Of a stretch of DNA of 36,518 bases, positions 32-36,000 are shown in pieces. This stretch comes from Octopus bimaculoides (lineage: Eukaryota), in contig NC_069000.1 of NCBI RefSeq assembly GCF_001194135.2, positions 40,969,214-41,005,731 of the forward strand. The letters run 5' to 3'. The position numbers were made by a program, and so were the translations under genes. The notes beneath the pieces were generated by a model, which worked only from the letters and a program-made list of their open reading frames with translations, was not told where the DNA came from and ran no database searches. Positions within the stretch are counted from its first letter, which is position 1. Each line of letters starts with the position of its first letter.

Positions 32-322
32 GTATATATATGTCAGGACACTTCAAACGGAATATTCCCAGTTCACCAAACTGCAAGTACTTTAACAAAG
101 AATAAGAAGACTGAGCGTTGGAAACTATGGTAGCGTTGGAAGCTCACGAACTAGTTCATTAGACAGCAGTACGGATTTAAGCTTCTCTTTAAAGTGCAAT
201 TAGAAGTAGATTTGAATCTTAACTATTTCAGGTCTTCAGTAAATTTGTAATAATGAAAATACACATAATTTATTGCAAAATTTATTTCTAAAATTCCTTT
301 TATTTCTCATCTTCTCTTTTAG

Positions 323-341
323 CTGAAGTATGCTGCGACAG
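323..341 (+). CDS. Gene A microexon (19 nt), xEVCCD(S)
   Basis: cttctcttttag|CTGAAGTATGCTGCGACAG|gtaagt. Same length and phase as gene B microexon 33274-33292. Confidence 0.85.
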
Positions 342-517
342 GTAAGTAGTTTATCGATTACTTTTTATTTAAAAGAATTAACCACAATTAGCAAGTTGGT
401 TATATTTTGTCCTGAGCATTTAAAATGTGCAACTTATTTATAAATCCTTTCATACCTACCTACAAACATACATAAATACATACGAACACACATTCCCCCT
501 CAAATATGCATACGCAC

Positions 518-563
<46 letters not shown>

Positions 564-3391
564 TGTGTGTGTATGTTAGTGTGCGTGTTTGTGTGTGTAT
601 ATCTGTGTAGGCATACATATACAAATATATGCACAAACAACAAATAATTCGGACATAAGTGAGAACAAGAAAGAGACAAAATGACAGAACTACCTTGACA
701 GATGGATATTTTCTTGGGTTTACTTCGATCACAGATTGTGAATCTACAATTTATCATCACAACTTTATTTTTTAATATACATGCATATCACATTATATGT
801 TGATATATTCACATAAGAAATGAAATATGGGACTCCAGCTGTGTCTTCAGTTTTGGTGGCTTCTCATTTATAAATATCCATGAAAATTCTCTAAGTAAGG
901 CATAAAGAAAATCAATCGAAGTTACCGAAGAAAATGGACATATCGTGATCTAGAATCAACGCCCGCTCTATCTATTTATCCTTTCTTGCCCTCCTAAATT
1001 ATGGTAGCCAAAAGCGTATATAAATTGTATTATTATTGATATAAACTTTTTTGTATAAAATTAGCTGATAAAATTAGCTGATAAAATTAGCTCTTAAATA
1101 TTTCAAATTGTTCATTACATTCTCCTTTTGAAATTTCAGCTGTCTCGGTATTGCTACCAATGATCCACATGATGGACGTAATTGCTCTCCGTGTATGCCT
1201 TACTTTCGACCACTTCTCACAAATAATATCAGCTGTGAGGGTGGTAAGTCAAAAGTTCTTTCTTTTCATTTACAAAATGGTTTTAGACAAAATCACAACG
1301 AAGGTTGAGCATTGAATTAAATGCATCATAGTATTTAGATTCATTTATTTCAGTTCTAAGTTGAACTCCCATCTTTACCATGTAGGTCTTTGCATTTCAT
1401 CTGAAAGAAATTGACGAAATCAACACAACCGACACATGTACATGTAATCGATTATATTTCCATCTATAATCTTTCTAAAAAGTTTATATGACTAGTTTTA
1501 AATAATAGAGGACAGTCATAAAGGGATAATTTAGCTATCCACAAAACCTCGATCCGACCATACTCTACTCCATGTACAACCATATAGGTGCTTTAGATTT
1601 CATGCCATACTAAATGGTTAAATCTTCTATGAATAAACTCATGCAGAAGTTCAGTTCTTCAAGGGATTAATAAATAACTATCAGTATTCAAATTATCCCC
1701 TTCCATTTAAATCGACGTGCATCTCTGGCCTCACTTAACATTTTAAGTGATACGATGAGAAGAATATTACAGAGTTAATACCTAACATATGTCAATCATG
1801 CTATGTTTTACACTGTCAAAATCTAACACCAGACAAAAATTCCTGACACATGTGTAACAGGAATTCACCGTTTCGTTGCTCGTGGTGGTGTCAACTGAGA
1901 AGTAAAATTCTGTTTGAATTGTTTAGAATTTACCGCTGACCAGAGATCTAATAGCGAGGGAATCTGCTGTTTTTCTGGAAATTGACCTTGAACAGATGCA
2001 AAGACATACCTGTCTATATCGTTTGTTTTGTGCTGAAAACAATCCTTTGAGTTTCAAAGCAACCAGATCTTTCTTTAGGTATTTTAATCTGACCATAAAA
2101 GTCACAATGTTTAGATATCTATAACTTTCTGCAATGTTATTACCAGTTCGAATATTCTACAAACACTTTCTGACTTGTAAACAAGCCATTCACTGTGTTT
2201 CGTCATGGAGAAAATTTCTCACTGTAGACATATGGTGTAAATCAGCTCGCAGCACCACCTGTCCAGGCTGTGAGATGAAAGCATTTCGGAGTAGTTAACT
2301 TTTTTTCAGTCATAGAAACCGTACAGTGACGCTGCGAGCTGATAAGAAAGATAATCTCTTTTATGTTTTTCCAGTCAACATCCGTCGGCTGGAAGCGCAA
2401 ATCGAGGGCTCATCGTAATTAAATTACGGGCTAAGAGTGCTAAGCTATGATAAGTAGTAATACAATGTTATTACTGAATGTGATATTAGCTTAATCGAAC
2501 TGTTAATAACATTGTATTAATATATATCACTGCTTAGCGCTCTCACTCCGTAATACTATAAATTTCTATCAGAAATCATGGACAACCTACACTATAATGC
2601 AGAAATAATTTCTTAATTATGATATCTTTTCATTGTTTCAATTTATTTTATTTTATTCATGTTTTATCTTCTGTACAGGTATCAATCATGGTATAAATGA
2701 CGTCACCCATGTAATTGATGCTTCTTTTATGTTTCATGATACGCATTTAGAAACAAACTTAATGAACGCTGACGGTGAGTAATCCTTTTTCTCAGATTAC
2801 AAAGATCTACATATCTATCGAGTTATCTGCATATCTATCTATCATTTTCAAATGTATATGAATACGTGATGTAGGTGGAGTACATATTATTGTAAGCGGC
2901 AATAAAACAATTTAGTCAACGGGGATTTCATAGCCTCATTCAAAATATTACCTTTTTATATGACCTATCCAACCTTAGATTCACAATTCCTTCGAATGAT
3001 AAATTAAGACCTGATCAACAGACAGCCATTAATTTATCGAAGTCAGCATCTAATACTTGTTCTTTTTTGTGTTTTTTTTTGGGGGGGGGCGGAGGTCATT
3101 ACGTTAATATAATATATTGCAAAGCAAATACAAAAGCGAAAATATTTTTTAAAATTTCAGGGAAGTTTAATCTGAATTCAGGATTTCTTCCACAAGCAGG
3201 AAATAAATTTAAGGGAGGTAAGATACCCTTTGGCAGATAATTTCATTGATAAGACTGTTTTAAGTTACATAAAGTTTATTTAAATATATATAAAACAGAA
3301 CGTGAATCACCTTATAAACGTTATAGAAGTCTGTAAACATGCACGTACCTGTGTGAGTGTGTGTGTGCGTGTGTGTGTATGTGTGTGTGTA

Positions 3392-3429
<38 letters not shown>

Positions 3430-6400
3430 TGTGTGTGTGTGTGTGTGTGTGTGTAAATATTAGCACTTCCAACAACATAAATATTTCCCCATGCTAACAT
3501 GGATTTAAAACTAATAACCGGAAATAAGAATAAGACTAAATTGAAAAATATTAAATATGCGAATATTAAGAATCAAAGACAAAATATGAGAAATATTAGA
3601 AACAACGTACTACTTCGTTGTTTTAATCATTCTCGTACTATCGGGAGTAGGAATAATAAGATAAAAAAACAAACACCTTATATATCCAAAAATGGTCGGA
3701 GAGGTAGAGGTTATAATACATCTTCTAACAAGAACGAAACTATTTGGTTTATTGTTCCATTCGCTAAACAAATTAAAGGTAATTTGGTCGGTAATTTATA
3801 TAAACTTTTTTCCAAACATTTTACAAAATGATATTATTAACCCTAGGCTTTTTAGAATTGGTCATTCTGTATCTAATAATTTATACCAGATTATATCCTC
3901 GATCAACGAAAGAAAATTATATTGTTTTATAATCACTGTAAAGGTAGTAAACGCCATAGGATTAATACCAATCGAATAAACGTTAGCGAGGAAAGTATAA
4001 TTTGGACATTTAACGTACGAAGGGAAAACTACTCTAGTAAAATCTCACCCCAACCTTTTGAATGTAAATAAAACTACAAACAGTAAATATCTAATCTGTA
4101 ACGATAACAAACAGTAATAATATGAGTAATAAAGAAAATACTTTCCCTGATTGCAAGCTTAAAAGTGAATGCTTATTTAAGAATTTTTGTAAGATAATTT
4201 CTGAGAGTAAAAATTACATTTATATAGGAGCCACGCAGAATTATATTAAAAAAACGCATTTCTTACCATATTTACACCTTTATTAATAGAAACAGGTCTT
4301 CTTCTACTAGCCCTAATACATTTATTTGGGATTTAAAGGATAAGAAAAAAGTTTTTTCTGTGGAGTGGGAAATTATAAGCAAGACTACTGCTAATAAACC
4401 TGGGAACTCTTTCTGCTTTCTTTGTTTAGAAGAGCTGTATTTTATATTATTTTCTAGAAGACGTCTCGTAAATGCTAAGATAGAAATGTGCATGCATCAA
4501 AATGGATATTTAGGAACTATCATTAGGTTTATAGTAATTATTGATAATTGCTTATATATTAAAGATATTCATATATTTGAATAGATCAAAATTTCTGGTA
4601 TAATGCAATTTTTCGGGCTTCATATACTAAATAAGTATAAATACTAATTAGATATTATAAATATAAGTTAAATCTAATATAAGTGGCAGTATATATCTGA
4701 TTTACTGTAAGTTTGATTAAACATACTTTTCTGAAATATTTAGTTAAAATTCCTATAGTAACCTATAGTAAAATTCCTATAGTAACCTAAACTTTAGATA
4801 CAACATATCATCTTGAAGTAGTGGTAGCTTTGGTGTAATTGGTTATCGTATAGATTTTCGATGTGTAGTATCTGGTAATATGTAAGTTCTGCTTATGTTT
4901 ATGTAATAAGTATTGACCGTATATTTACACAAATAATAATTTATTGTCAATCTTCTTTGCTTAAATTGCTAATGCTATTGCTAATGGCATACACAACATC
5001 TCTTATCAATTATCTACTTCTATCTGATTAATGGAAGTTTCTTGTGAACACAAAGACGTATAAGAAACTCAGTTGACTGTAGTGATCTATTAAGACACAT
5101 TATTATGTACAGCTCGGTTTCGATTCTTGATTGTAGGTATTCCCTAGTACTTTGCAACTTATACTCACGTGAAATGTATTAACATCCCGTTTTTTACTCG
5201 CTTTGTCCTTAAAATTGATGTGACCTTGATTAGATGCCAGAGTCTGATAAAAAGATATTGGCTTAAAAGGAAGTAAGAAACATCGTCTTTCACTTTAAGT
5301 TATGCAAGTAAAATAATGGTAATATTTTGCTTTCATTCAAAGGTTACCAGTACTAAGATAAAATTCTGCAGGATGATAATTTCTGCATTTCAGTCGTCAT
5401 TGGCCTAATAAATAATGGTAATTAATATGCTAAATGTGATCCAGTTAGTTTTATCCATACATTTCTTTTCGCTAAAAAATTTAATTTTGTGTTTAATAAA
5501 GATACCTCATCTTTTTCTGTTTTCTAGTTGGAGATACTATCAGTGAAAACCCTTTACTGATGGCAATATATCATGTGTTTCTTCGTGAATACAATAAACT
5601 TGTCGATAAAATGATCGAATTTGGTTACGAAAACGCCTCGGAAGAAGCAAAGAAATTGCTGATTGGAATATTTCAACATATTACTTACAACGAATATTTA
5701 CCAATGTTACTCGGTGTCGACACTCCTCTTAAATCTAAGACTACTGGAACCCGCACTTACGATAACCAAAAGCTACCTATGGTTTCACATTCTTTCTCAC
5801 TTGCCTATGAATTAGTCGTGGCTTCGATGTTGAGAGAATCGGTACAAGTTGCTCCAAATACAAATGAAAATTTGATTGATATAATAAAAGACGCAACAAA
5901 AGTGGATGACGATACTGAAATGACAAATATTGTCAAAGGAATGCTGGAACAGGCTAGTTTGGAAATTGGGAAGTATGTCAGTTTCCATTCTACATTTAAT
6001 CTGCAGCAGTGTAGGTAGATTTTTTCCCGCACCGGGGTCTGTAAAATAAATCCGAATATGTATGTACTAGCTCTTGGACCTGGCGTTGCTCGTGTTTTCT
6101 GTGTTGAAGTTAACTCCACCTCTGACCTTGTACTGAAATCTTCTACGTTCCCTGTGCCAACTATTACCAATTAAGATGTTATATCTGGTTTGACAGGGAT
6201 TTTAATCGGTTAACGCTTTCGACATGCTCCTAGATACTGGACCGTCTGAAATCGTAGTCAAAGTTTTGGGTGTACCTCGACTCGTTGAAAATAATGCTTG
6301 TTTATTTCTTATTTCTTTACTGCTCACAAGGGGCCACACACAGAGAGGAGAAACAAGGACAGATATATGGATTAAGTCGATTATATCGACCTCAGTGCAT

Positions 6401-7109
6401 AACTGGTACTTATTTAATCGACTCCGAAAGGATGAAAGGCAAAGTCGACCTCGGCGGAATTTGAACTAAGCATTCACCCGGCTAAGCATTTCGCCCGGCG
6501 TGCTAACGTTTCTGCTAGCTCGCCGCCTTTTTTGTTTATTTCTCTCCTCTTAATGCCACCCTCTGTACAAAATTGATCAGCGTGTCCAATCTCAGCAAAA
6601 TCCAAAGAAAAGTGTTAAGGTTATGTCATAGAATAGAATCTATGCGACCATTTATATGAAAATATCCCATTGATTTTTAAATCCTAATACATTATATGAA
6701 AGATCGATGTTTCATATGTTGAAGTGCTTAATTTTATTCATGGGTCAATTTTCTTCAAAATCAGTTTATTATTTTATTGTGAGTGAATTTTGACGATTTC
6801 TGCCTTTCACCAGTTTAATTTTAATTCTACTACATGACTCCGACCATAAACTTTACCTAAATATAAAATTTTCCATAAGCCTCGCTCACTCATCGATTTT
6901 CATCAAAATGGGACAAAATATGCAAAAGCTGCAGGGAAAATAACATCGTAATGGGAATTTCCATTAAAACGCCCGATTGAGCTCACAAAAATCGATGCCA
7001 ACTAAGCATTATCGAGTTTTCGAAAAATTCCAGTCTTATTTGAACTTCAGGGCATGTGCCAAAATTCATTAAAATCTGTTGGATGATGTGGGAGGAGTTA
7101 GAGTAACCC

Positions 7110-7183
<74 letters not shown>

Positions 7184-7741
7184 CAGACATCATTACACAT
7201 TTATGTATATAGATTTATGTATATGTGTGCATACACGTGAGTGTGTATGTCTGTCATTTATAAGTCACCGATTATCCGCATTATGCTTATAGAGTTGGTG
7301 GCTGTCTGGTAGGCTACTTAAATATTTTCTGGTATTTTGTTACGATATCCTTTTATTTTCTGATAAAATATGAAACAACAAATCACTGAACTCAATTTAA
7401 TCCTCAGCCTCTCCTCAGATTGCGTGTTAAAGTACCAATAGTAGGTATTATTATCATTATGGGGGCATAATATTTTCTCATAAATTCTTATATTTTTGGT
7501 ATTTTTATTTGCCTTATATTTTTCAGTAAAATACCCTGTGCTTTCCGAAACAATTGTAACTTTTCCGATGTAGTGGCAACTGTAACCCAAGATACACGTT
7601 TTTACGGAATACCTCCATACATCGTTTGGCTGGCAATCATAAACCCGCTTACAAATATGTCGTTTAAAGCATTCCCACACCATGATACTAACGGAAGACA
7701 ACTCTTAGAAACAATGTACATGTGAGTGAAAATCATATTAT

Positions 7742-7782
<41 letters not shown>

Positions 7783-10700
7783 CTCTAGGTTATTTAAAAT
7801 ATGTTTGTAACTTCTAAAGGCAAATGCACTTAACGTAGAGACAAAATTATTTCTTATGGTACAAAGCGTAAAAATGCCATATCTGCCTAGTATTTCATCC
7901 TAGCGGACTTCTGGCTCTTTTGCCTTCAGTAAAATATCAAAGAGCGATATCTCTGGGCAGATTCGACGAGTTTTTGATATGCGATCCTAACTGTGCATAG
8001 GATATGCTTTTGCTAGAAGAGACTTACGCTTATATCGAGTTCCAGCATTTTGATCGACTGCAAGAGCTCTAGCTGAGAACCACTCATGTCTAGTGGGGAT
8101 GTAGTAAAATGGTGTGATTTTATTTTATATGAATAGTATGCAACAACATTGTTTTCACCGAGCATCTTTAAACCAAGAGTCCACAAGAGTACACAAAGTG
8201 TTTGTGCCAATCTTATCTACGTTCTCTTAAAGTATGTTCATCTCTTTCTTTCCACGATGTAACTACAACAACCAAGATTTCGTGGTCCCTTAGTGCGATA
8301 TGTTTCCCTAACGCATTAGTTTATCGATCTAAGGTATTTCATGTAATCAAATAATATAAAAAGTCTTATTTATGGTTCACTTAATATCTACTTAAAAAGG
8401 ATTCTAAAAATATATGTATACTTTCATACAGTTAGAAGGTGTTGCACCACATCATTCTTCAAATATATTTGGAATATAAACTGTGATGATATATTAACAA
8501 TTCTAAAATTGCTGAAACCAAGAAGAGGTGAGCTTTGTCTTACGAAGAATTACGACATCCTATTATAGTCTTTTTCAAATATCTGATCTGTTGGATTCTC
8601 GCAGATAATTCAGTCGCTATTTACTGAAGAAGTTTTCAATACCAAATCGCTAAAATTGTTTATTCCTCACATAATAGTTTTGCCAAAATCTTGCAAAATG
8701 TTCATGCACAGTAAAAAGCAAACAAATAAACAAACAATACATCCAGTGTTTCACCAAAATTAAATCTGCATTAATAATAGCCACCTTCCTTAATTTTATA
8801 TATTTTACACACATAAACTAGAAAACATGACATAACAGTCTGTTTTTACATGTGAATACAGGAGTAAATAAGTTATGTCAGTGTATTGAAACTAGATATT
8901 CAATTCTTTGTTTATATCCAATCAAATTTCAATTACTAATAACTTCAATATTTTCTCTCTTTTTTTCTCTCTCTACTTTCTTTCTCCCTCTCCCCCTTTT
9001 TTGTCTCTCTCGCACTTTTTGTATATTGGATTTACATTTCCTTTCCGTTTCACGATAATTTTCTCCCTGGTATTTCCCCCTCATACACATAACTCATTCT
9101 TTGTTTTGGTCATAAAACACCTCCTCCTCTTTTCCATCATCTCTTTATTTCATTTTCCCTCCTTTTTCTCACTCTTCTCGCTTTGCTTTTACACTTCCAT
9201 CCGCTTTAAAATTCGTTGGAATTTCATAGTAATCGAGGTTAGGTATTGTATCAGGAATTCATAATTCCTTTCTTTTTAGTTCATTTCTCCACTTGCTCTT
9301 CCTTCACTTGCTCCTTCCGTTACTTCATCACAAACATTTTCCCCAGGTAAGATGTATTTTTTTTTATCGTAGTCAAACGACAAATTGGCAGTGTTCAAAT
9401 ATGTTACTATTTGTTAATAACATTATTGAATAAATGTTAACTCTTGATGTATTAACGATAGTGACTTCCTAAAAAACCAACCAACTCTTTGTGTATTTGT
9501 GTGTATGTGTGTTTCTAAGACATACATGCATGCATACATAATTCTCATTTATATACTTATTTATGTATTGCAGAAGTGTCTTCGACGTTGATTTTTTAAG
9601 TGGAATGTTTACTGAGAAAAAAGATCCTAACCTGAAACTCAGCCAAACATTAATGAGACAGTTCGAAGATCAATTTTCTACATTGAAAGAGGGTGACAGA
9701 TTTTATTATGAGAACGTCAATGAATTCCAGTCCAGTAAGCTACCAATTATTCATTATTATTGTTTGACTTTATTTAATTAACTAAAGTTACCTCAATACG
9801 ACATTGATCCAATTCATCGAAAATCATTCAACTACCCGCTCCATAAAAGTTGTTTTCCCGTCAATGAATTTGCCAACTGATACAATGCAGTGTGCGCCTT
9901 GTAACATTCTAAATGCCAGACACCCAACAGTGGCCTACGTTGAAGCATGAGTGCAAGCTCGGTCAAGATGAACTGTGGAAAGACGTGTCGCACGAAGAAT
10001 GCCCAAACTAGTTCACTCTTGCTTTCGTCATTGTCGTTGACATCATTGGAGTGTTTTAGATATTTCTGCGGATATCGAGGCGATGTATGCATTTACTACT
10101 TCTGCTCAGGTAGTCATTCATTCGAATATTATTCTTTCATTTTGTATGCAATATTTGTATTGTTTAATAATGTGAAATACTCCGTAGTTTTATTTTTTTT
10201 TCTTTGTAGTTCATTGTTCTATTATTTTTGCTAACCTTTATTTTACCCCCTTTCAGACCAGCTTGCAGAGATCAGAAAAGTGACGATGGCTCAGCTATTG
10301 TGTCGCAACGTAGTCAATCTAGATCAAGTAAAACAGTTTGCTTTTAATAAAACTTCGTGAGTATTTACTTCATCATGATAAACATTAATGTTTCTTTTGT
10401 TCTTTTTCTCTTACTCGCCACACTTTTATACTCTAAGATATTTTTGTACTAACGTCAGTTGTAATCCAATTTAGGTGTATCCTTTTTGTATCGGAAATTA
10501 CGTAATATTCAATTACTACAGTGCAATGAATTCAAGTGAAAAAAAGAATATATTGATGAAGGTCAGGATAAATCTTAATGTAGATGCATTTTCATGTACT
10601 TGTGTAATATATATATATTTTAATTACACATATACAAACAGAACAACACATTGATTTATGTTGTAGCAAATCTCTATTGAACAGATCTGTTAGTAAATTG

Positions 10701-13137
10701 TCACCCGAAAAGCAAACTTCAATTCATAGTTCTCGTGTTCCAGATAAAAGATGCTTGAATCTATTTGGTAATTTAAAGACGATTTTGCAGAATTTTCTAG
10801 CAGTTCAAGTGGCAACACAGAGACTCCTTCGTGAGCTCTAAATTCACCCACAAAGTGGATGAGAGGAAGATGAACTCTGAGTTGCACAATTTTTGTGCAT
10901 TGTCACCTACATTTCATGATGTATGAGGTGGTATCGAAAGGTTCCTAAACGCCCTGTGTCCAATAAAAATAATTTATTCACCAAAATTTTAACATCATCT
11001 CCTTCGAAATAGTTACCTTGCGCAGCAAAACACCGGTCCCAGTGTTCCTGCCACTTATGGAATCTGGCCTAGAAGTCGTTCTTCGCAATCGAGTCGAGGG
11101 CCTTCTGCGATTCGCTCTGGATTTTGATAACAGAGTTAAAACGCGACATTTGAGGTGAATTTTCATATTCGGGGGAAAAGATGTAAATCCACAGGTCCTA
11201 AAATTTTATGAATATTGTGAGGAGAGCCCGGCGACTGGGTGCACTCTCCGCGTGAAGGATCCAATTCTTCGCACTTTCACCGAATTTCCTCCCTCAGACG
11301 CTTCAAAATGTCGCAGTAGAACTCCCAATTAACAGTATGGCTCTGGGGGACGAATTCTCGATGCACAATTCCACATTTCCGAGGGTGACGCTTGTGACAG
11401 GACTTCCAAATCACTCATCGTCTTCCAGGGACGATTTTCCGCTTTTGAAGCACCACTCGAAACATTGCGTATGACCCATCGCCTCGTCACCGTAAACTTG
11501 CTGAAGCATGCTCAATGTCTTTGTAGCAGATTTCTCAAGTTCAACGCAAAATTATTTAAAGTTGGCTCTTTGTTTCTGTCCATGACATCATGCATACGAT
11601 CACAAAATCACAAATTTTACACTTGCGAAATAAACACAGTAATGTCACTCGACACACTGCCCCATGAAGGTACTGCTAGCTCTCACTGCGTACGCAACCG
11701 TGTGTAGTGCTCTCACCAAATTCAGAAATTAATCGCAACACCTACGCACACCATGGTTCACTTCTTCAATTAGATCTTACGTAATCCTTATTCATGTACA
11801 TTTTTTTACTAACATTATTCATAAATCGTAATTCTCATATATATAACAGACTATAATGGTAATAGTAATAACATAAGTAACTAGTTAAATTGAAGTTTTA
11901 AATAATAAAAATATCGTTCATTCTGTCTACATGTAATTACGTCTACTGTTTCATGTGATTAAAGTGAACATTTCCACAGAGAACAATAGAATTCAAAGTA
12001 AACGCGTTATAGAATTACATTAAAATTTTTTTTTAAATTAAGGTCAAATTTTCTTGCTATGTTAATGAGATTGCACAGACGTAGACAGGCATATAAGCTT
12101 CATCTCCTTTCACAGTGACAGCCAGTGCGGTTCTCAAGTATCACACCATCTGTAGCGATACAAGTGTTTTCTGATGTCTTACGGAATGTATTAAAGTGGT
12201 CTAGGTTAAAGATGCGTCCCTTCCGTTTTGCTCGATTTTTCGAGAGTAATTCGGAAAAGCTTTTGACGAGTTTGTAATTAGAAAGCAAGTTTCTTACTTG
12301 TGCTTTACAGCTGGTCTTGTAGTTTATGTTATAGAATATTTTCCAGTTTAGGATGTTAGGATGATGTATTCTCATTCGTGTAATTTGGATTATATTAGTT
12401 ATGTTATGTTGTAATATTTGATTGCTGAAAGTTTGTACAATTATGTTATTGAATATATTTTCTGCAGTATTTATCACATCATTTGCACTGCCGATGCCTT
12501 TCTGTATATTTCTATCTTATATTTGTCTACACTGACTAGAATGCACTGTTTCTATGTAATAGGGTTGTCTCGTCCTGCAACGGGGTAGATGTGTTATGAT
12601 TGATCATATTTTCATAAAATTTGAGATCGATGCTTGGGTTGAACTGATTAGTAGTAAAGTGTATATTTCAGCATGTGTGTGAGTATTTGAATTTGAGAGC
12701 CGTCTCTTTTCGAATGAATATAGAGATAGTCCATCGTTGCAGTAGTTTTTATTAGCATTATTGAAATATTGTTGTTATTGTTATAAACTTCCTTTTTTTT
12801 TCTTCACTATTTTCGTTAAGCTTTCTGCTATATGTTTATTTATTTCGACATTTATTTTCCTTTTCTTTCTAGGCCCGAAGTCAGTTGCTCTAGTATAACG
12901 CAGATAGATTTTTGTACGTATGCCGGAGTCAGTAATGTATGGACTCCTTTTCAAGCATCTTTCTCTCAGTGTGACAAAATTAAAATAGAGTACCGTACAT
13001 GCCAGTCAACAAAACTAGATTTATGTCCTTGTGAAGGAGATCCATTTAAGATACAAAGTTGCCCGGGACAAATGATCACACCTGACGGCATCGAAATATT
13101 TATATATGATCAAATGTTTGGAGGTGTGATGTTATAA
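323..13137 (+). CDS. Gene A: animal heme peroxidase-family protein (5'-partial), predicted catalytically inactive, with C-terminal TSP1-like module. Exons 323-341, 1140-1243, 2679-2774, 3161-3217, 5528-5972, 7527-7721, 9574-9734, 10257-10356, 12873-13137
   Basis: Manual splicing at AG/GT sites gives one open frame (1442 nt) with peroxidase landmarks: EVCCD, CMPYFR, NDVTHVIDAS, ENPLLMAIYHVFLREYNK, FQHITYNEYLPMLLG, DFLSGMFTE, EGDRFYYEN, QLAEIRKVTMAQLLCRN. Exon phases match paralogue B. Confidence 0.92.
1140..1243 (+). CDS. Gene A exon, SCLGIATNDPHDGRNCSPCMPYFRPLLTNNISCEG
   Basis: tttcag| ... G|gtaagt, 104 nt. Matches the peroxidase C..I...DP....CM.Y.R segment and gene B 28789-28898. Confidence 0.9.
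2679..2774 (+). CDS. Gene A exon, Ca2+-loop region GINHGINDVTHVIDASFMFHDTHLETNLMNAD
   Basis: ctgtacag| ... G|gtgagt, 96 nt. Matches the N.xTSxxDAS motif. Confidence 0.9.
3161..3217 (+). CDS. Gene A exon, GKFNLNSGFLPQAGNKFKGG
   Basis: atttcag| ... G|gtaaga, 57 nt. Same length as gene B 27731-27787 (GKFDLTTGFLSKTGVKFSGG). Confidence 0.88.
3350..3454. repeat. (GT)n microsatellite
   Basis: Seen directly. Confidence 0.95.
3560..4560 (+). mobile_element. Decayed Penelope-like retroelement, C-terminal part (IWF..PF..segment and GIY-YIG endonuclease)
   Basis: Broken frames read ETIWFIVPFAKQIKGNLVGNLYKLFSKHF, YIGATQNYIK and FIWDLKDK...VEWEIISK...CFLCLEE...LVN. These follow the order of PLE motifs (IWFNPP..K..KTNIG, YIG.TE..FK.R, W.I......C.LCL.EK). 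Stops and frameshifts are present. Confidence 0.75.
5528..5972 (+). CDS. Gene A large exon (proximal helix region)
   Basis: ttctag| ... AA|gtatgt, 445 nt. Overlaps ORF 5560..6018 and encodes VGDTISENPLL...HVFLREYNK...FQHITYNEYLP...SFSLAYELVVASMLRE. Confidence 0.93.
6300..6527 (-). repeat. Octopus-type SINE-like interspersed repeat (family 1, head GGCGGCGAGCT..)
   Basis: Shares AAGTCGATT.ATCGACC.CAGTG.ATAACTGGTACTTATTTAATCGA core with copies at 19300, 20225, 21713 and 35795. Confidence 0.8.
6560..7186 (+). mobile_element. Possible non-autonomous Helentron-associated (HINE/DINE-like) element ending in (CA)n
   Basis: Contains 'ccaaaattcattaaaatctgttggatgatgtgggaggagtt' followed by (CA)n, a layout I associate with such elements. 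No protein evidence. Confidence 0.3.
7113..7186. repeat. (CA)n microsatellite
   Basis: Seen directly. Confidence 0.95.
7527..7721 (+). CDS. Gene A exon, NKIPCAFRNNCNFSDVVATVTQDTRFYGIPPYIVWL...
   Basis: tttcag| ... AT|gtgagt, 195 nt. Not in the ORF track. Aligns with the DLxxxNxQRxRDHGLPxY segment and gene B 24746-24940. Confidence 0.9.
9574..9734 (+). CDS. Gene A exon, SVFDVDFLSGMFTE...EGDRFYYENVNEFQS
   Basis: ttgcag| ... A|gtaagc, 161 nt. Contains the GDRFYYE motif. Confidence 0.92.
10257..10356 (+). CDS. Gene A exon, NQLAEIRKVTMAQLLCRNVVNLDQVKQFAFNKTS
   Basis: tttcag| ... TC|gtgagt, 100 nt. Contains the QL.EI.K.....LLC.N motif. Confidence 0.92.
10922..11748 (-). mobile_element. Internally deleted mariner (Tc1/mariner) element
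   Basis: The minus strand reads CVELEKSATKTLSMLQQVYG..QCFEW..SLEDDE, then jumps to GIVHREFVPQSHTVNWEFYCDILKRLRE and ends KWQEHWDRCFAAQGNYFEGD. One end is TATGAGGTGGTATCGAAAGGTTCC at 10922. The other TIR is degenerate near 11748. Confidence 0.88.
12873..13137 (+). CDS. Gene A last coding exon: end of peroxidase domain plus TSP1-like Cys-rich module
   Basis: ttctag|G CCC GAA... ending in TAA. Overlaps ORF 12832..13137. All Cys align with gene B's last exon. Confidence 0.88.
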
Positions 13138-13186
13138 TGTCGTTCACTCGAATTTGATGTTCTATGATCAATGTTTCTTTATGTCT

Positions 13187-13888
13187 NNNNNNNNNNNNNN
13201 NNNNNNNNNNNNNNNNNNNNNNNNNNNNNNNNNNNNNNNNNNNNNNNNNNNNNNNNNNNNNNNNNNNNNNNNNNNNNNNNNNNNNNNNNNNNNNNNNNNN
13301 NNNNNNNNNNNNNNNNNNNNNNNNNNNNNNNNNNNNNNNNNNNNNNNNNNNNNNNNNNNNNNNNNNNNNNNNNNNNNNNNNNNNNNNNNNNNNNNNNNNN
13401 NNNNNNNNNNNNNNNNNNNNNNNNNNNNNNNNNNNNNNNNNNNNNNNNNNNNNNNNNNNNNNNNNNNNNNNNNNNNNNNNNNNNNNNNNNNNNNNNNNNN
13501 NNNNNNNNNNNNNNNNNNNNNNNNNNNNNNNNNNNNNNNNNNNNNNNNNNNNNNNNNNNNNNNNNNNNNNNNNNNNNNNNNNNNNNNNNNNNNNNNNNNN
13601 NNNNNNNNNNNNNNNNNNNNNNNNNNNNNNNNNNNNNNNNNNNNNNNNNNNNNNNNNNNNNNNNNNNNNNNNNNNNNNNNNNNNNNNNNNNNNNNNNNNN
13701 NNNNNNNNNNNNNNNNNNNNNNNNNNNNNNNNNNNNNNNNNNNNNNNNNNNNNNNNNNNNNNNNNNNNNNNNNNNNNNNNNNNNNNNNNNNNNNNNNNNN
13801 NNNNNNNNNNNNNNNNNNNNNNNNNNNNNNNNNNNNNNNNNNNNNNNNNNNNNNNNNNNNNNNNNNNNNNNNNNNNNNNNNNNNNNNN
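13187..13888. other. Assembly gap (N run)
   Basis: N bases. Confidence 1.
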
Positions 13889-16930: not shown

Positions 16931-17273
16931 TTATTTATTGGTCATTTCCTCAAATAGAAATTGCGCTCTTTCCATGAGCTTCTCGTAGTTATCCTTATAC
17001 GCCAGAGATTGCGCATCATTTCCCATCCTCATCTCTAAGAATCGATAGATGAGCTGCATTTCAGGAGTTGTAATTTGATTTGGGCAGCTCTCTATTTTAA
17101 ACGGACTACCAATGCAAGGACATGCATCTACTCTGCTTGACTGACATTTCCGGGCTTGTATCTGGAAAAATCTACATGTACCAGGAGCGATTCTAAAAGC
17201 AGTCCAAGTCGAAGCAACACCATGATACTTACAAAAATCTATTTCGGGTATTGTAGAACAATCGACATCACCC
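16931..17273 (-). CDS. Gene B last coding exon: end of peroxidase domain, TSP1-like module and helical tail
   Basis: ttctag|G GGT GAT... ending in TAA. Overlaps ORF 16931..17308. Confidence 0.9.
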
Positions 17274-19454
17274 CTAGAAACAATAAAAATGACAATAAAT
17301 AAATGCACAGTGTAAAGATAAACAATAATGAAAAAACGCTAGAAGAAATGAGAAGTAAAGATTAAGAATGATAAAAACAGCAACTACAATAATTGCGACT
17401 AGAAGAAACATAAATAATTCACTTGCTTGTTCTTATTAAAGTATACGCACGTATACACATACAGAGCTATGCAAAAGCACAACTACACATTTCTATTATT
17501 CAATTCAACCCGGACACAGTTCACAAATTACATGTAAAAACATGATCAACGATGAAACATCTAAACCCCGGAGGACATGACAGTAACTTTATTATATGGA
17601 AACAGTTAATTCCAGTCAGTGTAGACAAATATAAATAACAAATATACAGAATGGTATCGGCAATAAAAATGATGTCATACATACTACAAAGTATACATAC
17701 AATAAAATAATGTAGAAATTTTCAACAATTATATATTACAACGTAGCATAAGCAATAATCTAAATTACACGAATGAAATTGTCCGTCGGATAGAAGACAG
17801 GAACAACACCGAATACATCATACAAACACATACAACAGAAATAAACTGGAAAATATTTGTTTATAACATAGAATGCGAGACAAACTATAAAATACAAAAT
17901 AAACTATTAACATCAATTACTCTAAGGCCGGCTACAACATACCATATATGTGAAAAATAATAAATTCCAGACTCACATTCTCATAGCAAATTTGTCAAAT
18001 ACTTCTTAATTGTTTTCGAAAAACCGCACAAATTGCAAGAAACGCATCTATATCGCATAGAGCCCCGTCAATGTGACCGGTGTAGTAGGTGATGACCGGC
18101 TTGTACTGAGCGGAAGATCGTAGCTTAAATGAGTGTCAGTAATGTGGCTGTTATCACATTAACGTAACATCGGAATTTGACCTTAAAATCTATTTTACAT
18201 TGTTCGATGGCTGCTATGCTGTGCACCAATTTGAAGGGTTTAATCTAAGTAATCAACCTCGGAACTTACAAGAATTCTACGTTCACATGAATTCATTGCA
18301 CTGGAATGGTTGAATAGTACGTAATTTCCGATATATAATATGCATGAAATTTGAGCATAATTGTCTGTATAATTTTATTTCAGAGAATAATTAAGGAAAC
18401 AAGAGATTAAAAATAATCATTATTGCTTATAATGATGAAGTGAATACTCACGAAGCCAATTCAAAAGCTTTTTCTTTTACTTTATCTAAGTTGTCTATGT
18501 TACGACACAAGAGAAGAGCCATAGATGTTTTTTTTATCTCTGCAAGTTGGTCTGAAATACGAAATGAAAGAAAATAAAGGTTAAAAGAAATTGTAGAACA
18601 TCGAATTACAAAGAACAAAAATTAAAAAAAAAGCTACAGTGTATTTCATATCATTATAGAATACAAAAATATTATATACAAAAATGAAACAAAAACCAAA
18701 AAGAAAACTTGGAAAGACAAGTGGCAAAGTTTATTGCCGAATCAAATTGTTTTTTACCCCAGTTCCTGCAATTTCAAACAAAACAACGACGATACTAGTT
18801 TAGCAGTATTAAAACTCTTTCTATTTTATTTAATCAAACAAAATCGTTTATATTCATATCTAATATCTAATGTATATGTTACTTTCTCTTACGTTCTGGA
18901 ATCAAGCCTTGCCTGAATCCATTATTCCATCTATGCTCTAAAAAACAAAGAAAATTGAATGCATGTACGAAGATCAGATCATTCAACTACGAACCCCATC
19001 TCTGTAAATATGTCACCTTATCTTCTACCGAAACCCTGGAAATGTTTAAGTAGAAGTTAATAATCCTTTCAACTGTGGACACAAGACTTGGCATTTTGGG
19101 AGGCAAGAAAATATTCAACATAACTTGTTCACTATTATTCTCCCCTCTCTCTTACTCTTCCAAATACAAGCAAACACATGGACACACGCGAAAACATGCT
19201 TTCTTCCCACCCGCATCGAATCTTTCCAACGTTGAAATATCTTTGCAAGGAGGAGATACCACCAAGTAAATTGCAATATACAACAGCAACAATAATAAAG
19301 GCTTCAAATTTTGCCACAAGGGCAGCTTGCGGGAGGTGGGGATGAGTCGATTACATCGACCCCCAGTGTTCAACTGGTACTTATTTAATCGATCCCGAAA
19401 TGTTCAAAGCAAAGTCGACTTCGGCAGAATCTGAACTCAGTTCGCCGCCTTAAT

Positions 19455-19655: not shown

Positions 19656-22600
19656 TTTTGTGGGACTTTCCTATTCGAACGGACAAGATATTAGACTTAA
19701 TTCAAATTTCGCCTAAATCAGCTTCGCCTTTTATCCTTTCGGGGTCAATAAAATAGGTATCAGTTGAACACTGGGTATAATTGACTTACCCTCTACTCGC
19801 AGATTTGAGGCTTTGTGCCTATAGTAGATATTGTAACGTAGTTAGTCGTCGCCAATTATAGTAGTATAGCCACTATTGATGACGATGCTTGTTTACACTA
19901 TCACCTGGTAGTAACAATAAAACATATAATGAAGCGGGATACCAATAACCTAGCAATCCAACAAACTCTCCACGTACTATACACAAGCCAACAAGTGGTA
20001 TTCCGACAAACTGCCGAAACGACACCTAACGACTTCCGGTGATTAACGCCTACTCTCTGTATCTCTCACTCAGACCGCTATTGTTTATAGTCGTTCAGTC
20101 AAGTCTATTCTTGCAGCGCATGTCATGATACTCGCCACAGTAGTAGAAAGGATCATTCATATTCTTATTGGTGTTAGAATAGTGGATTGGCAAAGTCTTT
20201 AGAGTATCGAAATTGAGGTATTTATTTCTTCATTGCCTACATAGGCGGAACAAACAAGGACATACAAAGGGATTATGTCGATTTCATCGACCCCAGTGCA
20301 TAACTGGTACTTATTTAATCGATCACGAAAGGATGAAAGGCAAAAGAAATGTAGTCATTCTAGCAATGACCATCGCAACTATTTCGTTAGCTATCGTAAA
20401 CAACGATTTGTGTCATTTAAGTTGGAGTAGTTTGATTTGAGCGAAATACTGCTGCTATTTCTAACAGACCTGTAATCACGTTAGGGATTGTTCGTTGAAT
20501 TGACTCAAACAACATTGGTTCAGTATTCGTGTCAGTATTCGTTTAGTTTTCAGACATTGGACTGTTGGAGCACCGCCTTTAGTCGAACAAATCGATCCTA
20601 GAAATCATTCTTTTTAAGCCTAGTACTTATTCCATCAGTTTTTATGCCGAGCTTCTAGGTGACGGGGATCTAAACACACCAACATCGGTTGTCAAGCGAT
20701 GGTGGGCAGGAGGGGGGAGGGGGAGACCACACACACACATAGGCAACAGGCCTCTTTCAGTTTCCGTCTACCAAATCCACTCACAAGGCTTTGGTCAGCC
20801 CGAGGCTATAGTAGAAGACACTTACCCGAGGTGCCAAACAGTGGGACCATGTAGTTGAGAAGCATGCTTTTTTACCACACAGCCACGCTGCGCTAATCAA
20901 TTTTTTATTCACAATCACAAGATCTTTTGTAGGAGATGAATATAACTGTATGGTAGCCATACACATCACAAGTCTATTTCATTTTCATGTTTAAGGAAGG
21001 TAAAAGATCTAGTAGTGTGATATTAAGTTGTTTATTGCTGGCACTCCGTCGTTTACGACGTCGAGGGTTCCAGTTGATCCGATCAACGGAACAGCCTGCT
21101 CGTGAAATTAACGTGCAAGTGGCTGAGCACTCCACAGACACGTGTACCCTTAACGTAGTTTTCGGGGATATTCAGCGTGACACAGTGTGACAAGGCGGAC
21201 TCATTGAAATACAGGTACAACAGAAACAGGAAGAAAGAGTGAGAGAAAGTCGTGGTGGAAGAGTACAGCAGGGTTCGCCACCATCCCCTGCCGGAGCCTC
21301 GTGGAGCTTTAGGTGTTTTCGCTCAATAAACACTCACAACGCCCGGTCTGGGAATCGAAACCGCGATCCTATGACCACTGCCCTAACCACTGGGTCATTG
21401 CGCCTCCACTAAGTTGTTTATATAAAACTACTAAATATAATTACTTCTTTTCAGTAAAAATTGTGGAAATCTTTTTTTCGTTTCAACGTTTACATGAGGG
21501 TAGATACTACAGCGGGCCAGACTAAATGACCAGCAATATTTCNNNNNNNNNNNNNNNNNNNNNNNNNNNNNNNNNNNNNNNNNNNNNNNNNNNNNNNNNN
21601 NNNNNNNNNNNNNNNNNNNNNNNNNNNNNNNNNNNNNNNNNNNNNNNNNNNNNNNNNNNNNNNNNNNNNNNNNNNNNNNNNNNNNNNNNNNNNNNNNNNN
21701 NNNNNNNNNNNNCGTAGCGGTATTTCGTCTACCGTTTCGTTCTGAGTTCATATTCCGCCGAGGTCAAATGTACCTTTCATCCTGTTGGGGCCGAGTAAAT
21801 AAATACCAGTTATGCATTGGGGTCGATGTAATCGACTTAACCTCTTTGTCCTTGTTCTTCCCCTCTATGTTGGGCAATAAAAAAATAAATTTACTATGAT
21901 CTTTTCAGTTCATATTCTGTCGGGAATCTGTGATTTACCTGTTATCTTCCTGGAATCAATCACAAAAAAAAAAAACAAAAAAAACAACTAATAATATAAT
22001 GCCAACTATAGTATTAGCGACGCATACTTTCGTGGAATGAATATCTACACCAGAAAATGTTAGTGCAACGTAAAAAAAATAAATAAAAAAGAGAAAGACA
22101 AGACGATGACACATGGAGACTAAAATCGAAACGGGATTCTCAAAACGTCTCATTAATACAGGTTTTGTATATATTTGCCCAATGTAATAAATAGCAGTAG
22201 AAAATTAAATAAAGTCAAGCTATAATGATAAATCCTTTTATAACTTACCCGCCAGGAATACGCCGGTATGTTCATAGTAAAATCTGTCAGAGTTTTGTAT
22301 TGAAACGAATTGATCTTTCATAAGTTTCAATAGTGTTTTTCCAGCAGGCTTGTCATTATCGATAATCTCTGTGAACATGCCGCTTAGGAAATCCATGTCA
22401 TAGACGGTACTGTAAAATTGAAACATTCTCATATATATATATATGTGTGTATATATATGTATATATATATATATATATCTGTGTGTGTGTGTGTGTGCGT
22501 GTATATATAAATATATATATATATACATACGTTTTTCGACATAGGTCTTTGTGTTTCTGATGGCTAACTTATATATTTCACACAGCAATCACAACATATA

Positions 22601-23093: not shown

Positions 23094-26000
23094 TGTGTGT
23101 GCAATGGAAGTGGGATGGTGAACAGTCAACACTGAAAAGAAAAATCAGTGTTTCATCTCTGTGTGAGTGTATGTGTGTATGTGTGTGCGTCTACAAGGGA
23201 AGTATGTGAATGTTTGTATGTGTGAACCAGTGTTCTTTCAGTAACAAAGGATGATCGGTGTCACATCTCTAAAGACAACCACTGGACAACATTGACAAGT
23301 GTATTGATTTGATTATTCTAACTGTTTTGTTAAAAATAATTATTACAATCACTCACACCTACAGAAACTCATTAGAGAAAATGATCATTGCCTGAGTGTA
23401 TCAAGAATATAAAACGATTGTAGTTGAAAGGTATATTATAAATTTGGTATTAAAAGAATCATTAAACTAAAAACTTGGTTTTGTACTTTATTTATATATA
23501 AAATACTACAAGTAACCGTCATTTTGGATGGCACGGGGCCAGCTAGTATTACAAATAAGTACTTAAGTGAAATTAACGGTCTTTGTTTCTGAATGGCTAA
23601 CTTATACCGTCCACGCTGCAACCACTTCAGTTTCAGTACATGGAGTAGGGTAGAATGGTGGAAAGGGAGGGGAAATGGCATACAGTAGTGAGTTTATCTG
23701 CCACATGGGGAGGGAGCTGAGTTATAGTTAATTTGGTGAACTCAAGTTTGGGCGGCTTGGACAAGAGTAGAGAACTATCCCCGAAGAAAAGAAGACGAGT
23801 CTGAACCGATACAGTCTTGTATATAACGTCCGTATAACTCCGTAGTCGGTTCAATGAACTGATCACCAAGAAGATTTGAGTTGCAACGTAGCCGATAAAT
23901 AAGATGGAGAGATTGGGAAACATTCCCATTCACACAGAAACCACAAGTATTCGTTGGTAGATCTCGCCCGGAATGAAATGCAGTTAAGTCTGATGTAAGC
24001 TCGGTGAGGCGGAAACGTGTGGGCGTACTAGAATTGAAGATGATCCAACGGTTGAGGAAGTATTCAAGAGCCTAGAGATGCGAAACAAGTAACTATAGGA
24101 ATTAGGGCTTACTTTTTGTTTACGTTAATCGCCCACTCTCTTATAATACACTCTCTGAAGCAGTAAAAAGTTCTTGGCTTATAACGAATTAAGATGGCCG
24201 TATTACATTTGTAGATTTGGCAGCTGTCATTATCAAGAATCATTACAGAACTATTTCACTGACACTGTGGCATGATTGAAATCTTTAATGTTGATTAAAC
24301 GTAGGTTAGACAGCGAAAAAATTTTGTTTTCCCGAAGTGAAAATGCTATTAATGTAAATCCTCTATCTCTTACCTTGATTTAATGATAATTAAGTATAGT
24401 GCCGTTGAGTGGATTAATAATTATTGAGAGCATTTGGATATATATTTTCGCACAGGCGATATAGTCAGATTAATGTATACTCATATCAAATCGATTAGTT
24501 TCGATATGTATGAGTAAAACTAACTGGATGTTTTTACGGCTTAACATCTCTTTCTTATAAATCTTCAATTCTATTTAAAGGCTTCCTTAATCATAGTTTA
24601 AACACAACGGATAGTTGAAATCAGAATTTTTTTTCTCTCAGGAATATAAAAAAAATGTTGGAACTGGTAAGTTACAACAGTTTCACAAGTATTTTTAAAA
24701 AGTATAACGGTTTAAAACATATGAAAAACAACAATTTCCACTCACTTATAAGTCTTCTCAAGCGCAGTTTTGTCCACTGCAGTGTGGAAGGGCAGGTCTC
24801 CAAAAGTTTGGATTTGATTTTCATTCCAGATTGCCAACCAAATAACGTAGGGTGGTATTGCGAGATAACGCGTGTCTTGGGTTAGGACTGACACTATGTC
24901 AGAATATTTGCAATTATCCCGAAAATTACAGGGTATTTTTCTGGAAAAAATAAACAAACAAAAATATCAGAAAAGAAAATAATATATTTGTAAGAATTAA
25001 ATTAGAGACACATAACTTCTATGACTGGTAAGATACCACGCGTTCTGGTGAGACATATAATAATTAAATTTATCTTGGTTTACTGTTTCTTATTTTATCA
25101 CCTCACTAAATGTAACATGTAAAGTTTTCTATGATAGAACGTAAAACGACGTAAACCAACAAAATATTTTGACCAGTGATCGAACCATGATGTCATCCAG
25201 TAACATTATAACAATTTGACAGATAATCAATGAGACACACGCAAAAACGTATACACATACATATTTGTCTACATACACAGACACATGAATTCAAAGTGGT
25301 ATTTATTTAAAAACACCGGTGAAATTAAAGAATTTTAATTCGGAAAATTGGATGTTGGTGAAATAGTATAGATTTACCTGCCGATTTTTAAACTGGCTTC
25401 ATTCAGCATTCCTTCGATGATATTTTTCAACTTGGTTTCATCGTCCACAACTGCTGCGTTGTTCATTAAATCGGTCAAATCTTTATTTTCAGTTGGAGAA
25501 ATTTTTACTGTTTCTCTCAACATTGAAGCCAATACTAATTCATAGGCAAGTGAAAATGAATTAGAAATTATAGGTAAGATCTCGGCTTCGTAAGTACTAG
25601 TTGGTAATTGTTCACCAATCAGCAGTGGTAAATATTCGTTGTAAGTAATATGCTGAAATATTCCAGTCAGCAACTTCTTTGTTGCTTCCAAGGGATTTGC
25701 ATTACCAAATTCAGTCATTTTATCGACAAGTTTATTGTGTTCACGGAGGAAAACATGATATAGTGCCATCACTAAGGGGTTTTCGTTGATTGCATCTGAA
25801 ACTACAAGATAAAGGAGAGATATGTTTTATTAAACACAACATCAATTTTCTTAATGAACCGATATGTATGAGTAAAACTTACTACGTCAAATTTAGCATA
25901 TTAATTACTATTATCTATTCAGTCACAAACGAGTGAAATGCATAAGTGTTCGTCTAACAAATTTTGAATTCAGTTCTGAAAGTAATTAAACGAAAGTAGA

Positions 26001-35794: not shown

Positions 35795-36000
35795 GGCGGC
35801 GAGCTGGCGGAATCATTAGCACGCAGGACGAAATACTTCGTGGTATTTCGGCCGTCCCTACGTTTTGAGTTCAGATTCTGCCAAGTTCGACTTTGTCTTT
35901 GATCATTTTGGGGTCGATTAAATAAGTACCAGTTACGCGCTGGGGTTGTAATCGATGCTTCCCCACTTTCTCCAAGCTGCCCTTGTGGCAAAAATTTCAA
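35795..36000 (+). repeat. SINE-like repeat family 1 with (AAT)n tail. A second partial copy follows at about 36060-36178
   Basis: Head GGCGGCGAGCTGGCGGAATCATTAGCACG and core GGGGTCGATTAAATAAGTACCAGTT. Confidence 0.78.

Follow-up and report, generated by a model that had tools for sequence, protein, structure and literature searches.

Within a stretch of 36,518 nucleotides of the Octopus bimaculoides genome (NCBI RefSeq assembly GCF_001194135.2, contig NC_069000.1, positions 40,969,214 to 41,005,731 of the forward strand; hereafter the window), two paralogous genes, gene A on the plus strand and gene B on the minus strand, lie tail-to-tail and encode proteins of the animal heme peroxidase family. 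Our analysis suggests, with a probability that we put at about 0.72, that both products are heme-free secreted pseudo-peroxidases of an octopod-specific, locally duplicated subfamily, which are intact and under selection and would have a non-catalytic binding or scaffold role outside the cell. The peroxidase-cyclooxygenase superfamily is marked by a distal motif x-G-Q-x-x-D-H-D-x, which contains the halide Gln, the ester Asp, the catalytic His and the Ca2+ Asp, and also by x-R-x-x-E-x, with the catalytic Arg and the second ester Glu, a proximal His hydrogen-bonded to an Asn, and a Ca2+ site (PMC4420034). The exons of A and B in which the heme-side residues are expected are the following.

35475–35654, minus strand: gene B exon E-1, distal heme-side region, in which FGKLLKFDMF (35526–35497) replaces x-G-Q-x-x-D-H-D-x.
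5528–5972, plus strand: gene A exon E2, distal Arg site and rewritten proximal helix, flanked by ...ttttctag and gtatgt; GDTISENP at 5530–5553, SHSF at 5785–5796 (His codon of SHS at 5788–5790), AYELVVASM at 5803–5829 with its Ala codon GCT at 5821–5823.
25378–25801, minus strand: gene B exon E2, SDAINENP...ILPIISNSFSLAYELVLASMLRE, with Asn, not His, at the SHS position; SDAINENP at 25799–25776, AYELVLASM at 25547–25521 with its Ala codon GCT at 25529–25527.
7527–7721, plus strand: gene A exon E3, with DVVATVTQDTRFYG (7567–7608) instead of D-L-x-A-x-N-I-Q-R-G-R-D-H-G.
24746–24940, minus strand: gene B exon E3, with DIVSVLTQDTRYLA (24900–24859), where Leu replaces the Asn partner of the proximal His.

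Read in frame from 5530, exon E2 of gene A opens with GDTISENPLL and gives GDTISENPLLMAIYHVFLREYNKLV...YDNQKLPMVSHSFSLAYELVVASMLRES...SLEIG. To place its residues we used a profile built from 53 relatives that were found by reading an entire representative library of 1.84 billion proteins; sets of 53 and of 50 sequences were aligned, and residue columns were scored against 37 canonical relatives in the profile alignment. At the column of the proximal His, which is His in 37 of 37 canonical relatives, both A and B have Ala, and the Arg three residues before it, present in 97% of the canonical sequences, is Leu in both; the Gly before the His has become Val in A and Leu in B. A preliminary description of the locus, made in a gap-free register, had given the same R to L and H to A changes for gene A and had reported AYELVLASML and SDAINENP in gene B, which indeed lie at 25801–25378 on the minus strand. 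For the distal Arg, again found in 97% of canonical relatives, the profile alignment shows Thr (A) and Ala (B), and the pairwise alignment with myeloperoxidase (MPO) shows a one-residue deletion (GDT.ISE versus GDTRSSE); under either alignment this segment of A and B contains no Arg or Lys. The earlier observation that GDTISENP lacks the distal Arg and keeps the Glu is thereby reproduced in both alignments. Retention of this second ester Glu in A and B means little, because the residue is variable in paralogues (Gln, Lys or deleted in P0001, P0151 and P0164) and its partner Asp is gone.

The loss extends beyond the residues noticed at first. The Asn of N-I-Q-R-G-R-D-H-G is Val in A (VTQDTRFYG) and Leu in B (LTQDTRYLA), and the first conserved Arg of this motif is Asp in both. 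The distal motif of gene B reads FGKLLKFDM, with Gln replaced by Lys, the ester Asp by Lys and the His by Phe, so that only the Ca2+ Asp is kept; the distal exon of gene A lies off the window, and its O. sinensis orthologue P0165 reads FGKLLMFDM, with Gln to Lys, the ester Asp to Met and His to Phe. The replacements are mostly hydrophobic side chains. Peroxidasin loses its activity when no more than the Gln and the ester Asp are changed (PMC8533639), and gene B has lost these two and five more residues. From the sequences and the structure models discussed below we infer that canonical heme binding, and peroxidase or halogenating activity with it, would be absent in both A and B; the original proposal that neither protein ligates iron probably holds, and the additional loss of the Asn partner, the distal His, the Gln and the ester Asp strengthens it. 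The new proximal helix has a motif of its own, AY[EK]L..[A]SM[LS]R, which is conserved across the subfamily; being common to orthologues and paralogues in four species, it is not a chance pattern.

Membership of the peroxidase family was established at several levels. The E2 exons of both genes match Pfam PF03098 (Animal haem peroxidase; E = 2.4e-16, profile positions 217–367) as well as the myeloperoxidase, lactoperoxidase and eosinophil peroxidase chains in the PDB. Once spliced, gene B matches PF03098 with E = 4e-58 and 198 bits over positions 43–530, and gene A with E = 8.5e-52 over positions 108–530 (cut-off 25 bits). AlphaFold2 models reach pLDDT 92.6 and pTM 0.90 for the gene B protein and pLDDT 88.5 and pTM 0.90 for its O. 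vulgaris relative P0004, and the top Foldseek matches of both are lactoperoxidase and MPO (TMq 0.72–0.74 for the gene B model, TM 0.80–0.83 for that of P0004), followed by the heme-less ectodomain of DUOX1 (TM 0.66–0.75). The Ca2+ ligands are retained, namely the Asp of FDM and the T-x-x-x-D-x-S loop (NDVTHVIDAS in A, NDVTAPLDLS in B), as are core motifs away from the heme (REHN, QHITYNEYLP, GDRFYYE, LLCRN). Across the 64 highly conserved canonical columns, gene B keeps 32 and differs in 32. It may be added that two Cys columns about 90% conserved in canonical relatives are both lost, with Ile and Arg in A (exons 7527–7721 and 9574–9734) and Trp and Lys in B (24940–24746 and 22409–22249), and that the stretch from the Ca2+ loop to the GD motif is approximately 15–25 residues shorter than in canonical enzymes and lacks the canonical Cys pair.

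An apparent loss of this kind could arise from a wrong register, annotation or assembly, the true protein having a His at the iron after all. MPO is one residue shorter before AFRYGH, so that a pairwise alignment with it shifts the register by one and sets the His opposite the second Val and not the Ala, and the window does contain six N gaps. Neither register supplies a His at the ligand column, however, and the helix region of gene B is entirely devoid of His, as are the 15 residues on either side of it. The exon is distant from all gaps, and its sequence is repeated in the RefSeq protein (100%) and in independent O. sinensis, O. vulgaris and Argonauta assemblies. The gap-free register is the correct one because P0006 and P0153 keep the His exactly in the predicted column (AYKLAVHSML; FSVAYKLAVHSMLR), and on these sequences the artefact is effectively refuted. 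There is also the His of SHS in gene A, which the preliminary description had found replaced by Asn in gene B and for which it had considered an alternative register that brings this His to the iron. The contrast between A and B is real and Asn occurs in several paralogues as well (P0003, P0004 and P0006, besides gene B), the SHS His occupying the Asn column of the family (I-x-N-x-F). In the AlphaFold models NSFS.AYEL.LASM forms one helix of 14 residues (residues 302–315 in P0004 and 225–238 in P0163, the RefSeq protein of gene B; pLDDT >93), and the SHS-equivalent residue is its first, 11 residues upstream of the ligand column, where such a register fails.

Coleoid cephalopods recode many transcripts by A-to-I editing, and in principle the transcripts of A and B could be recoded back into those of a functional enzyme. 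The codons at the His and Arg sites exclude this: GCT encodes the Ala in both genes and TTT the distal Phe, the Arg site is ACT/ATC in A and GCA/ATC in B, and an A-to-G change cannot yield His (CAY) or Arg (CGN/AGR) from any of them. The earlier remark that A-to-I editing cannot turn GCT into CAY is thus borne out, and we give restoration by this route practically no chance.

If the enzyme is dead, its duplicates may simply be decaying, the heme pocket having been rewritten by neutral drift. Several features would fit such decay: 32 of the 64 highly conserved columns are changed in gene B, one disulfide pair is lost, omega is above typical enzyme values, the C-terminal tail of gene A is seemingly truncated relative to its orthologue, and the RefSeq models at the locus are 5'-incomplete or fused. 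The comparison of A with B speaks against it. The two proteins share 52% amino-acid identity, and non-synonymous differences are well below synonymous ones (pN 0.298, pS 0.535, Fisher P = 1.5e-13; omega 0.27–0.57 depending on the method); despite a dS of about 0.9–1.4, which is near saturation, approximately 1,400 coding nucleotides over 9–10 exons contain no stop or frameshift, and no splice site is disrupted. Gene A and its O. sinensis orthologue differ by a dN of 0.039 and a dS of 0.12–0.13 (omega 0.30–0.35), and an unbroken identical stretch of 64 residues, LPMLLG...SVQVAP, spans the rewritten helix. The new helix motif is itself kept in four species, and the AlphaFold models are of high confidence. 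We therefore consider decay very unlikely; as judged from sequence and models, A and B are functional genes under purifying selection and not pseudogenes.

The subfamily to which they belong appears to be confined to octopods. In the scan of the representative library with P0002 as the query, seven matches were below 1e-30, all from Octopus or Argonauta; in a separate search the E-value drops from 1e-83 to 1e-27 outside the octopod set. All close relatives are from Octopoda: gene A, gene B (P0163), P0003, P0169 and P0171 in O. bimaculoides, P0165, P0164, P0151 and P0002 in O. sinensis, P0004, P0152, P0167, P0001 and the fused model P0166 in O. vulgaris, and P0005, P0168 and P0170 in Argonauta hians. 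The preliminary description had asked whether the AYELVxASM signature recurs in other coleoids, and signatures of this type are found in O. sinensis, O. vulgaris and Argonauta hians; no decapodiform member was found in the searched collections, whose coverage of squid and cuttlefish proteomes is uncertain. The proximal column is Ala in A and B and in all nine close members that were scored; the wider octopod set has Asp in P0164 and P0167, Tyr in P0007 and P0022 and His in P0006 and P0153.

These last two sequences, from O. sinensis, are of particular value for the order of events. Together with the N-terminal half of P0166 from O. vulgaris they form a lineage that keeps the distal His, GDDRINE with its Arg and Glu, and the proximal His, and already lacks the Gln, the ester Asp, the Arg before the proximal His and the Asn. 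This lineage, annotated as 'chorion peroxidase-like', has the same helix scaffold and the same tail, a probable divergent thrombospondin type-1 repeat (TSR), as A and B. In a neighbour-joining tree (no bootstrap) the lineage with His or Tyr is sister to the fully stripped clade; further out come the His-less P0013 and P0184, then P0019 and P0028, and then intact mollusc enzymes. The His-retaining paralogue of O. vulgaris is the immediate upstream neighbour of the gene A orthologue, with which it is fused in P0166. On the sequences compared, the loss of heme residues is stepwise, with the P0006/P0153 lineage in an intermediate state, and the fully stripped state is older than the split between Octopus and Argonauta. 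P0013, P0184 and P0019 are encoded by intron-less transcript contigs in the Logan assemblies of SRR27666058 and SRR27666079 (L002, L003), and their nearest named relative is a bivalve sequence with 32% identity. P0013 and P0019 are peroxidase-TSR proteins that keep the distal His and Arg and have Asp (P0013) or Ala (P0019) in the proximal column, which suggests that loss of the proximal His was repeated in the mollusc-type clade.

The last exon of A and B encodes a Cys-rich module. A profile of 13 such tails finds thrombospondin-1 type-1 repeats in the PDB (E = 6e-10) and also properdin, C7 and UNC5; of the single tails, two of 13 match Pfam TSP_1 (PF00090; best E = 1e-4), and A and B are not among these. 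In intact mollusc relatives this position is occupied by a textbook TSR with W-x-x-W...R-x-R-x-C. The only Pfam domain detected in the spliced proteins and their relatives is PF03098. In gene B AlphaFold predicts a helical tail after the module. The tail of gene A, …ITPDGIEIFIYDQMFGGVML*, is approximately 25 residues shorter than …ITPDNIEKLADIMRYDQLMQYFLRQGEITDMEIRVHELYDMISVTK of the O. sinensis orthologue (window 13080–13190) and resembles the result of a small deletion with a frameshift; since it ends 50 bp before an N gap (13187–13888), a real truncation and an assembly error are both possible. No RGD or KGD integrin-binding motif is found in the spliced A or B proteins. An 'SRGD' in the raw open reading frame of gene B spans an intron-exon boundary, so it is not in the mRNA.

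With such domain content, the old peroxidase fold would serve as the surface or pocket of an extracellular binding or scaffold protein, and the TSR-like module would bind the matrix or the cell surface. The function would then be analogous to that of the DUOX ectodomain, of PXDNL and of the adhesive side of peroxinectins. The DUOX ectodomain (family 7 of the superfamily) has, like A and B, a peroxidase fold without the proximal His, and no longer acts as a peroxidase (PMC4420034); it is, however, fused to a transmembrane NADPH oxidase, ancient and widespread, while the octopus proteins are free and secreted, have a C-terminal TSR-like module, are restricted to octopods, derive from a mollusc lineage of secreted peroxidases and have lost more residues. 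PXDNL is a lineage-restricted paralogue of an active secreted peroxidase, inactive through changes in its active site and presumed to act through other domains (PMC8533639). In PXDNL only the halide Gln and the ester Asp are changed, the His ligands are kept and the accompanying domains are LRR, Ig and vWC, whereas in the octopus proteins both His, the Arg, the Asn, the Gln and the Asp are gone. As A and B have only PF03098 and the TSR-like tail, with neither the DUOX architecture (transmembrane segments, EF hands, NOX) nor that of peroxidasin (LRR, Ig, vWC), these likenesses are functional analogy and not orthology. Peroxinectins (family 3) are invertebrate secreted peroxidase-domain proteins with a recognised non-catalytic role in cell adhesion (PMC4420034); unlike A and B, which have neither RGD/KGD nor the heme residues, they keep heme, activity and an integrin-binding motif. 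The order of signal peptide, peroxidase domain and TSR is shared with canonical mollusc secreted heme peroxidases (Mercenaria 'heme peroxidase 2-like' P0185, and P0030, P0038 and P0068), the nearest intact relatives in the tree, but these keep G-Q-F-L-x-H-D, GD-x-R, AAFRFGHS and NIQRGRDHG and are only 25–30% identical to A and B.

Several points weigh against this interpretation. Its weakest step is the specific matrix-binding or scaffold role, which we derive from domain content only, and the TSR-like module of A and B is itself degenerate, with WxxW reduced to one Trp (WTPF or WTAF) and no single-sequence Pfam match. An omega of 0.3–0.5 is relaxed for an enzyme family. Transcript contigs carrying exactly the A or B proteins were not found, and RNA-seq was not mapped. 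The distal residues of gene A are taken from the orthologue P0165, since its own exon is off the window, and the AlphaFold models contain no ligand. Finally, the conserved Tyr and Met of the new helix and the retained Glu leave a small chance of a non-canonical cofactor.

In that case A and B would still bind heme, a metal or another cofactor through an unusual ligand (the Tyr or Met of AY.L...SM, the Glu or the SHS His) and have some redox or carrier function. Ligation of heme by Tyr or Met is known from other proteins. Here eight of nine subfamily members have Tyr where canonical enzymes have Ala, the former His column is followed by SM in all nine close members scored and, in the wider octopod set, also by SI (Argonauta P0168 and P0170), the Glu is kept in A and B, and the fold, and presumably the cavity, is retained. 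Yet Phe, Lys, Met, Thr, Ala or Ile now stand in place of all the distal catalytic residues, the Arg beside the former Asn partner is now Asp, the SHS His gives way to Asn in gene B and several paralogues and stands 11 residues off the ligand position, the Glu is itself replaced or deleted in paralogues, and no positive sign of cofactor binding appeared in this analysis. We consider such a cofactor rather improbable. Hardly better are the prospects of a second group of ideas, in which the former heme cavity, with a newly conserved hydrophobic and aromatic lining (Phe at the distal His column, AY[EK]L..ASM on the proximal helix), has been repurposed (for a lipid, a pigment or tetrapyrrole breakdown product, or a cofactor held by Tyr or Met) or the proteins are secreted decoys or antagonists of active peroxidases from the same cluster; this seems unlikely, and if true it would mean that octopods alone evolved a new molecular function here, one that goes beyond a scaffold.

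Heme-free pseudo-peroxidases as such would open no long-standing question and would be of little surprise to a specialist, dead peroxidase domains being already known; what deserves attention is the completeness of the loss, the preservation of an intermediate paralogue next door and the octopod-specific expansion. The octopod subfamily is apparently undescribed: our literature search on octopus peroxidase-like proteins returned generic names only and no description of the subfamily, and the Euprymna genome paper reports independent tandem peroxidase clusters in squid and octopus and does not discuss active-site loss (PMC6386654). Expression of a 'chorion peroxidase' in the oviducal gland of O. 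maya has been reported (PMC8976471); the qPCR primers have no match in the window at up to 3 mismatches, so that result is not applicable here. The names in use ('peroxidase mlt-7', 'myeloperoxidase', 'heme peroxidase 2', 'chorion peroxidase-like') suggest an activity that is very probably lacking, and production of oxidants should not be assumed from them. This correction of labels bears on octopus transcriptome and proteome studies that read such matches as antimicrobial or cross-linking enzymes. One cluster, moreover, offers a stepwise series from enzyme to pseudoenzyme, through intact mollusc relatives and a paralogue with both His and Arg to stripped, duplicated copies under selection, and a function, if found, would make the subfamily one more of the few lineage-specific gene-family innovations listed for cephalopods.

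The exon structure behind these comparisons was worked out from blastn and tblastx of A against B, tblastn with relatives, inspection of splice sites and a TGYTGY scan. A phase mismatch common to both genes revealed exon E4b and a micro-exon of 19 nt, and exon E1b, whose length is a multiple of three and hence frame-neutral, was found through an extra segment in P0004. Gene A has nine exons in the window, its 5' end being cut by the window edge, and gene B has ten, from 35654–35475 down to 17273–16931. AG/GT sites flank every junction, the exon phases are compatible in A and B alike, and each spliced frame stays open as far as its stop codon. Besides the exons given above, the genes consist of the following.

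323–341, plus strand: gene A micro-exon of 19 nt, ..EVCCD.., AG/GT flanked; it restores the phase between the off-window distal exon and E0.
1140–1243, plus strand: gene A exon E0, CLGIATNDPHDGRNCSPCMPYFRPLLTNNISCEG, from tblastx of A against B, tblastn with P0004/P0005 and splice sites.
2679–2774, plus strand: gene A exon E1, Ca2+-binding loop NDVTHVIDAS, ligand residues kept.
3161–3217, plus strand: gene A exon E1b, GKFNLNSGFLPQAGNKFKG.
9574–9734, plus strand: gene A exon E4, ..DFLSGMFTE..GDRFYYEN.., conserved core motifs kept.
10257–10356, plus strand: gene A exon E4b, QLAEIRKVTMAQLLCRNVVNLDQVKQFAFNKT.
12873–13137, plus strand: gene A last exon E5, with a probable divergent TSR and the stop codon at 13135–13137.
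33274–33292, minus strand: gene B micro-exon, ..EECCG.., paralogous to that of gene A.
28789–28898, minus strand: gene B exon E0.
28193–28282, minus strand: gene B exon E1, Ca2+ loop NDVTAPLDLS.
27731–27787, minus strand: gene B exon E1b, GKFDLTTGFLSKTGVKFSG.
22249–22409, minus strand: gene B exon E4, ..DFLSGMFTE..SDRFYYEH...
18452–18551, minus strand: gene B exon E4b, QLAEIKKTSMALLLCRNIDNLDKVKEKAFELA.
16931–17273, minus strand: gene B last exon E5, with a probable divergent TSR, a predicted helical tail and the stop codon at 16933–16931.

The micro-exon is easily overlooked; it carries a C-C motif of the family (EVCCD in A, EECCG in B), is kept in both genes and is needed for the reading phase. 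Spliced gene B is 100% identical over 99% of its length to the RefSeq protein 'peroxidase mlt-7 [Octopus bimaculoides]' (P0163, 551 aa), which validates its model. Gene A is approximately 90% identical to the O. sinensis 'chorion peroxidase-like' protein P0165, and RefSeq places it within a model of 1074 aa that is apparently fused with a neighbouring gene (L004 32495–38701). Such fused public models join gene A or its orthologue to the upstream His-retaining paralogue both in O. bimaculoides (1074 aa) and in O. vulgaris (875 aa, P0166). The likely signal-peptide exon of gene B, RLFVALILTGIAVIVQG, as in an O. vulgaris relative, lies off the window, approximately 5.5 kb upstream of the first in-window exon (L004 4432–4482, chromosome CM046620.1), and RefSeq P0163, whose start is an internal Met, does not include it; P0004 and P0164 each have a signal peptide. 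For the exon that encodes the N-terminal C..Y..NG.CNN region of gene B, neither the window nor the 10 kb upstream, a stretch that holds N gaps, gave a match.

The window is AT-rich eukaryotic DNA (GC approximately 30%) with six N gaps and many microsatellites, and Rfam and tRNA scans of it gave no matches. Comparison of A with B by blastn and tblastx shows that the two genes arose by an inverted segmental duplication of the whole locus, positions 42–13085 of A corresponding to 33515–17061 of B. Blocks of their introns still align with 62–72% identity, for example 10129–10540 with 18695–18282 around E4b. An interspersed repeat of 100–140 bp, SINE-like in look but with no tRNA or Rfam match, is found in both orientations in introns and flanks of both genes; its copies, 67–84% identical to each other, lie at 6333–6470, 19345–19440, 19696–19788, 20239–20344, 21742–21875, 35795–35955 and 36058–36175.

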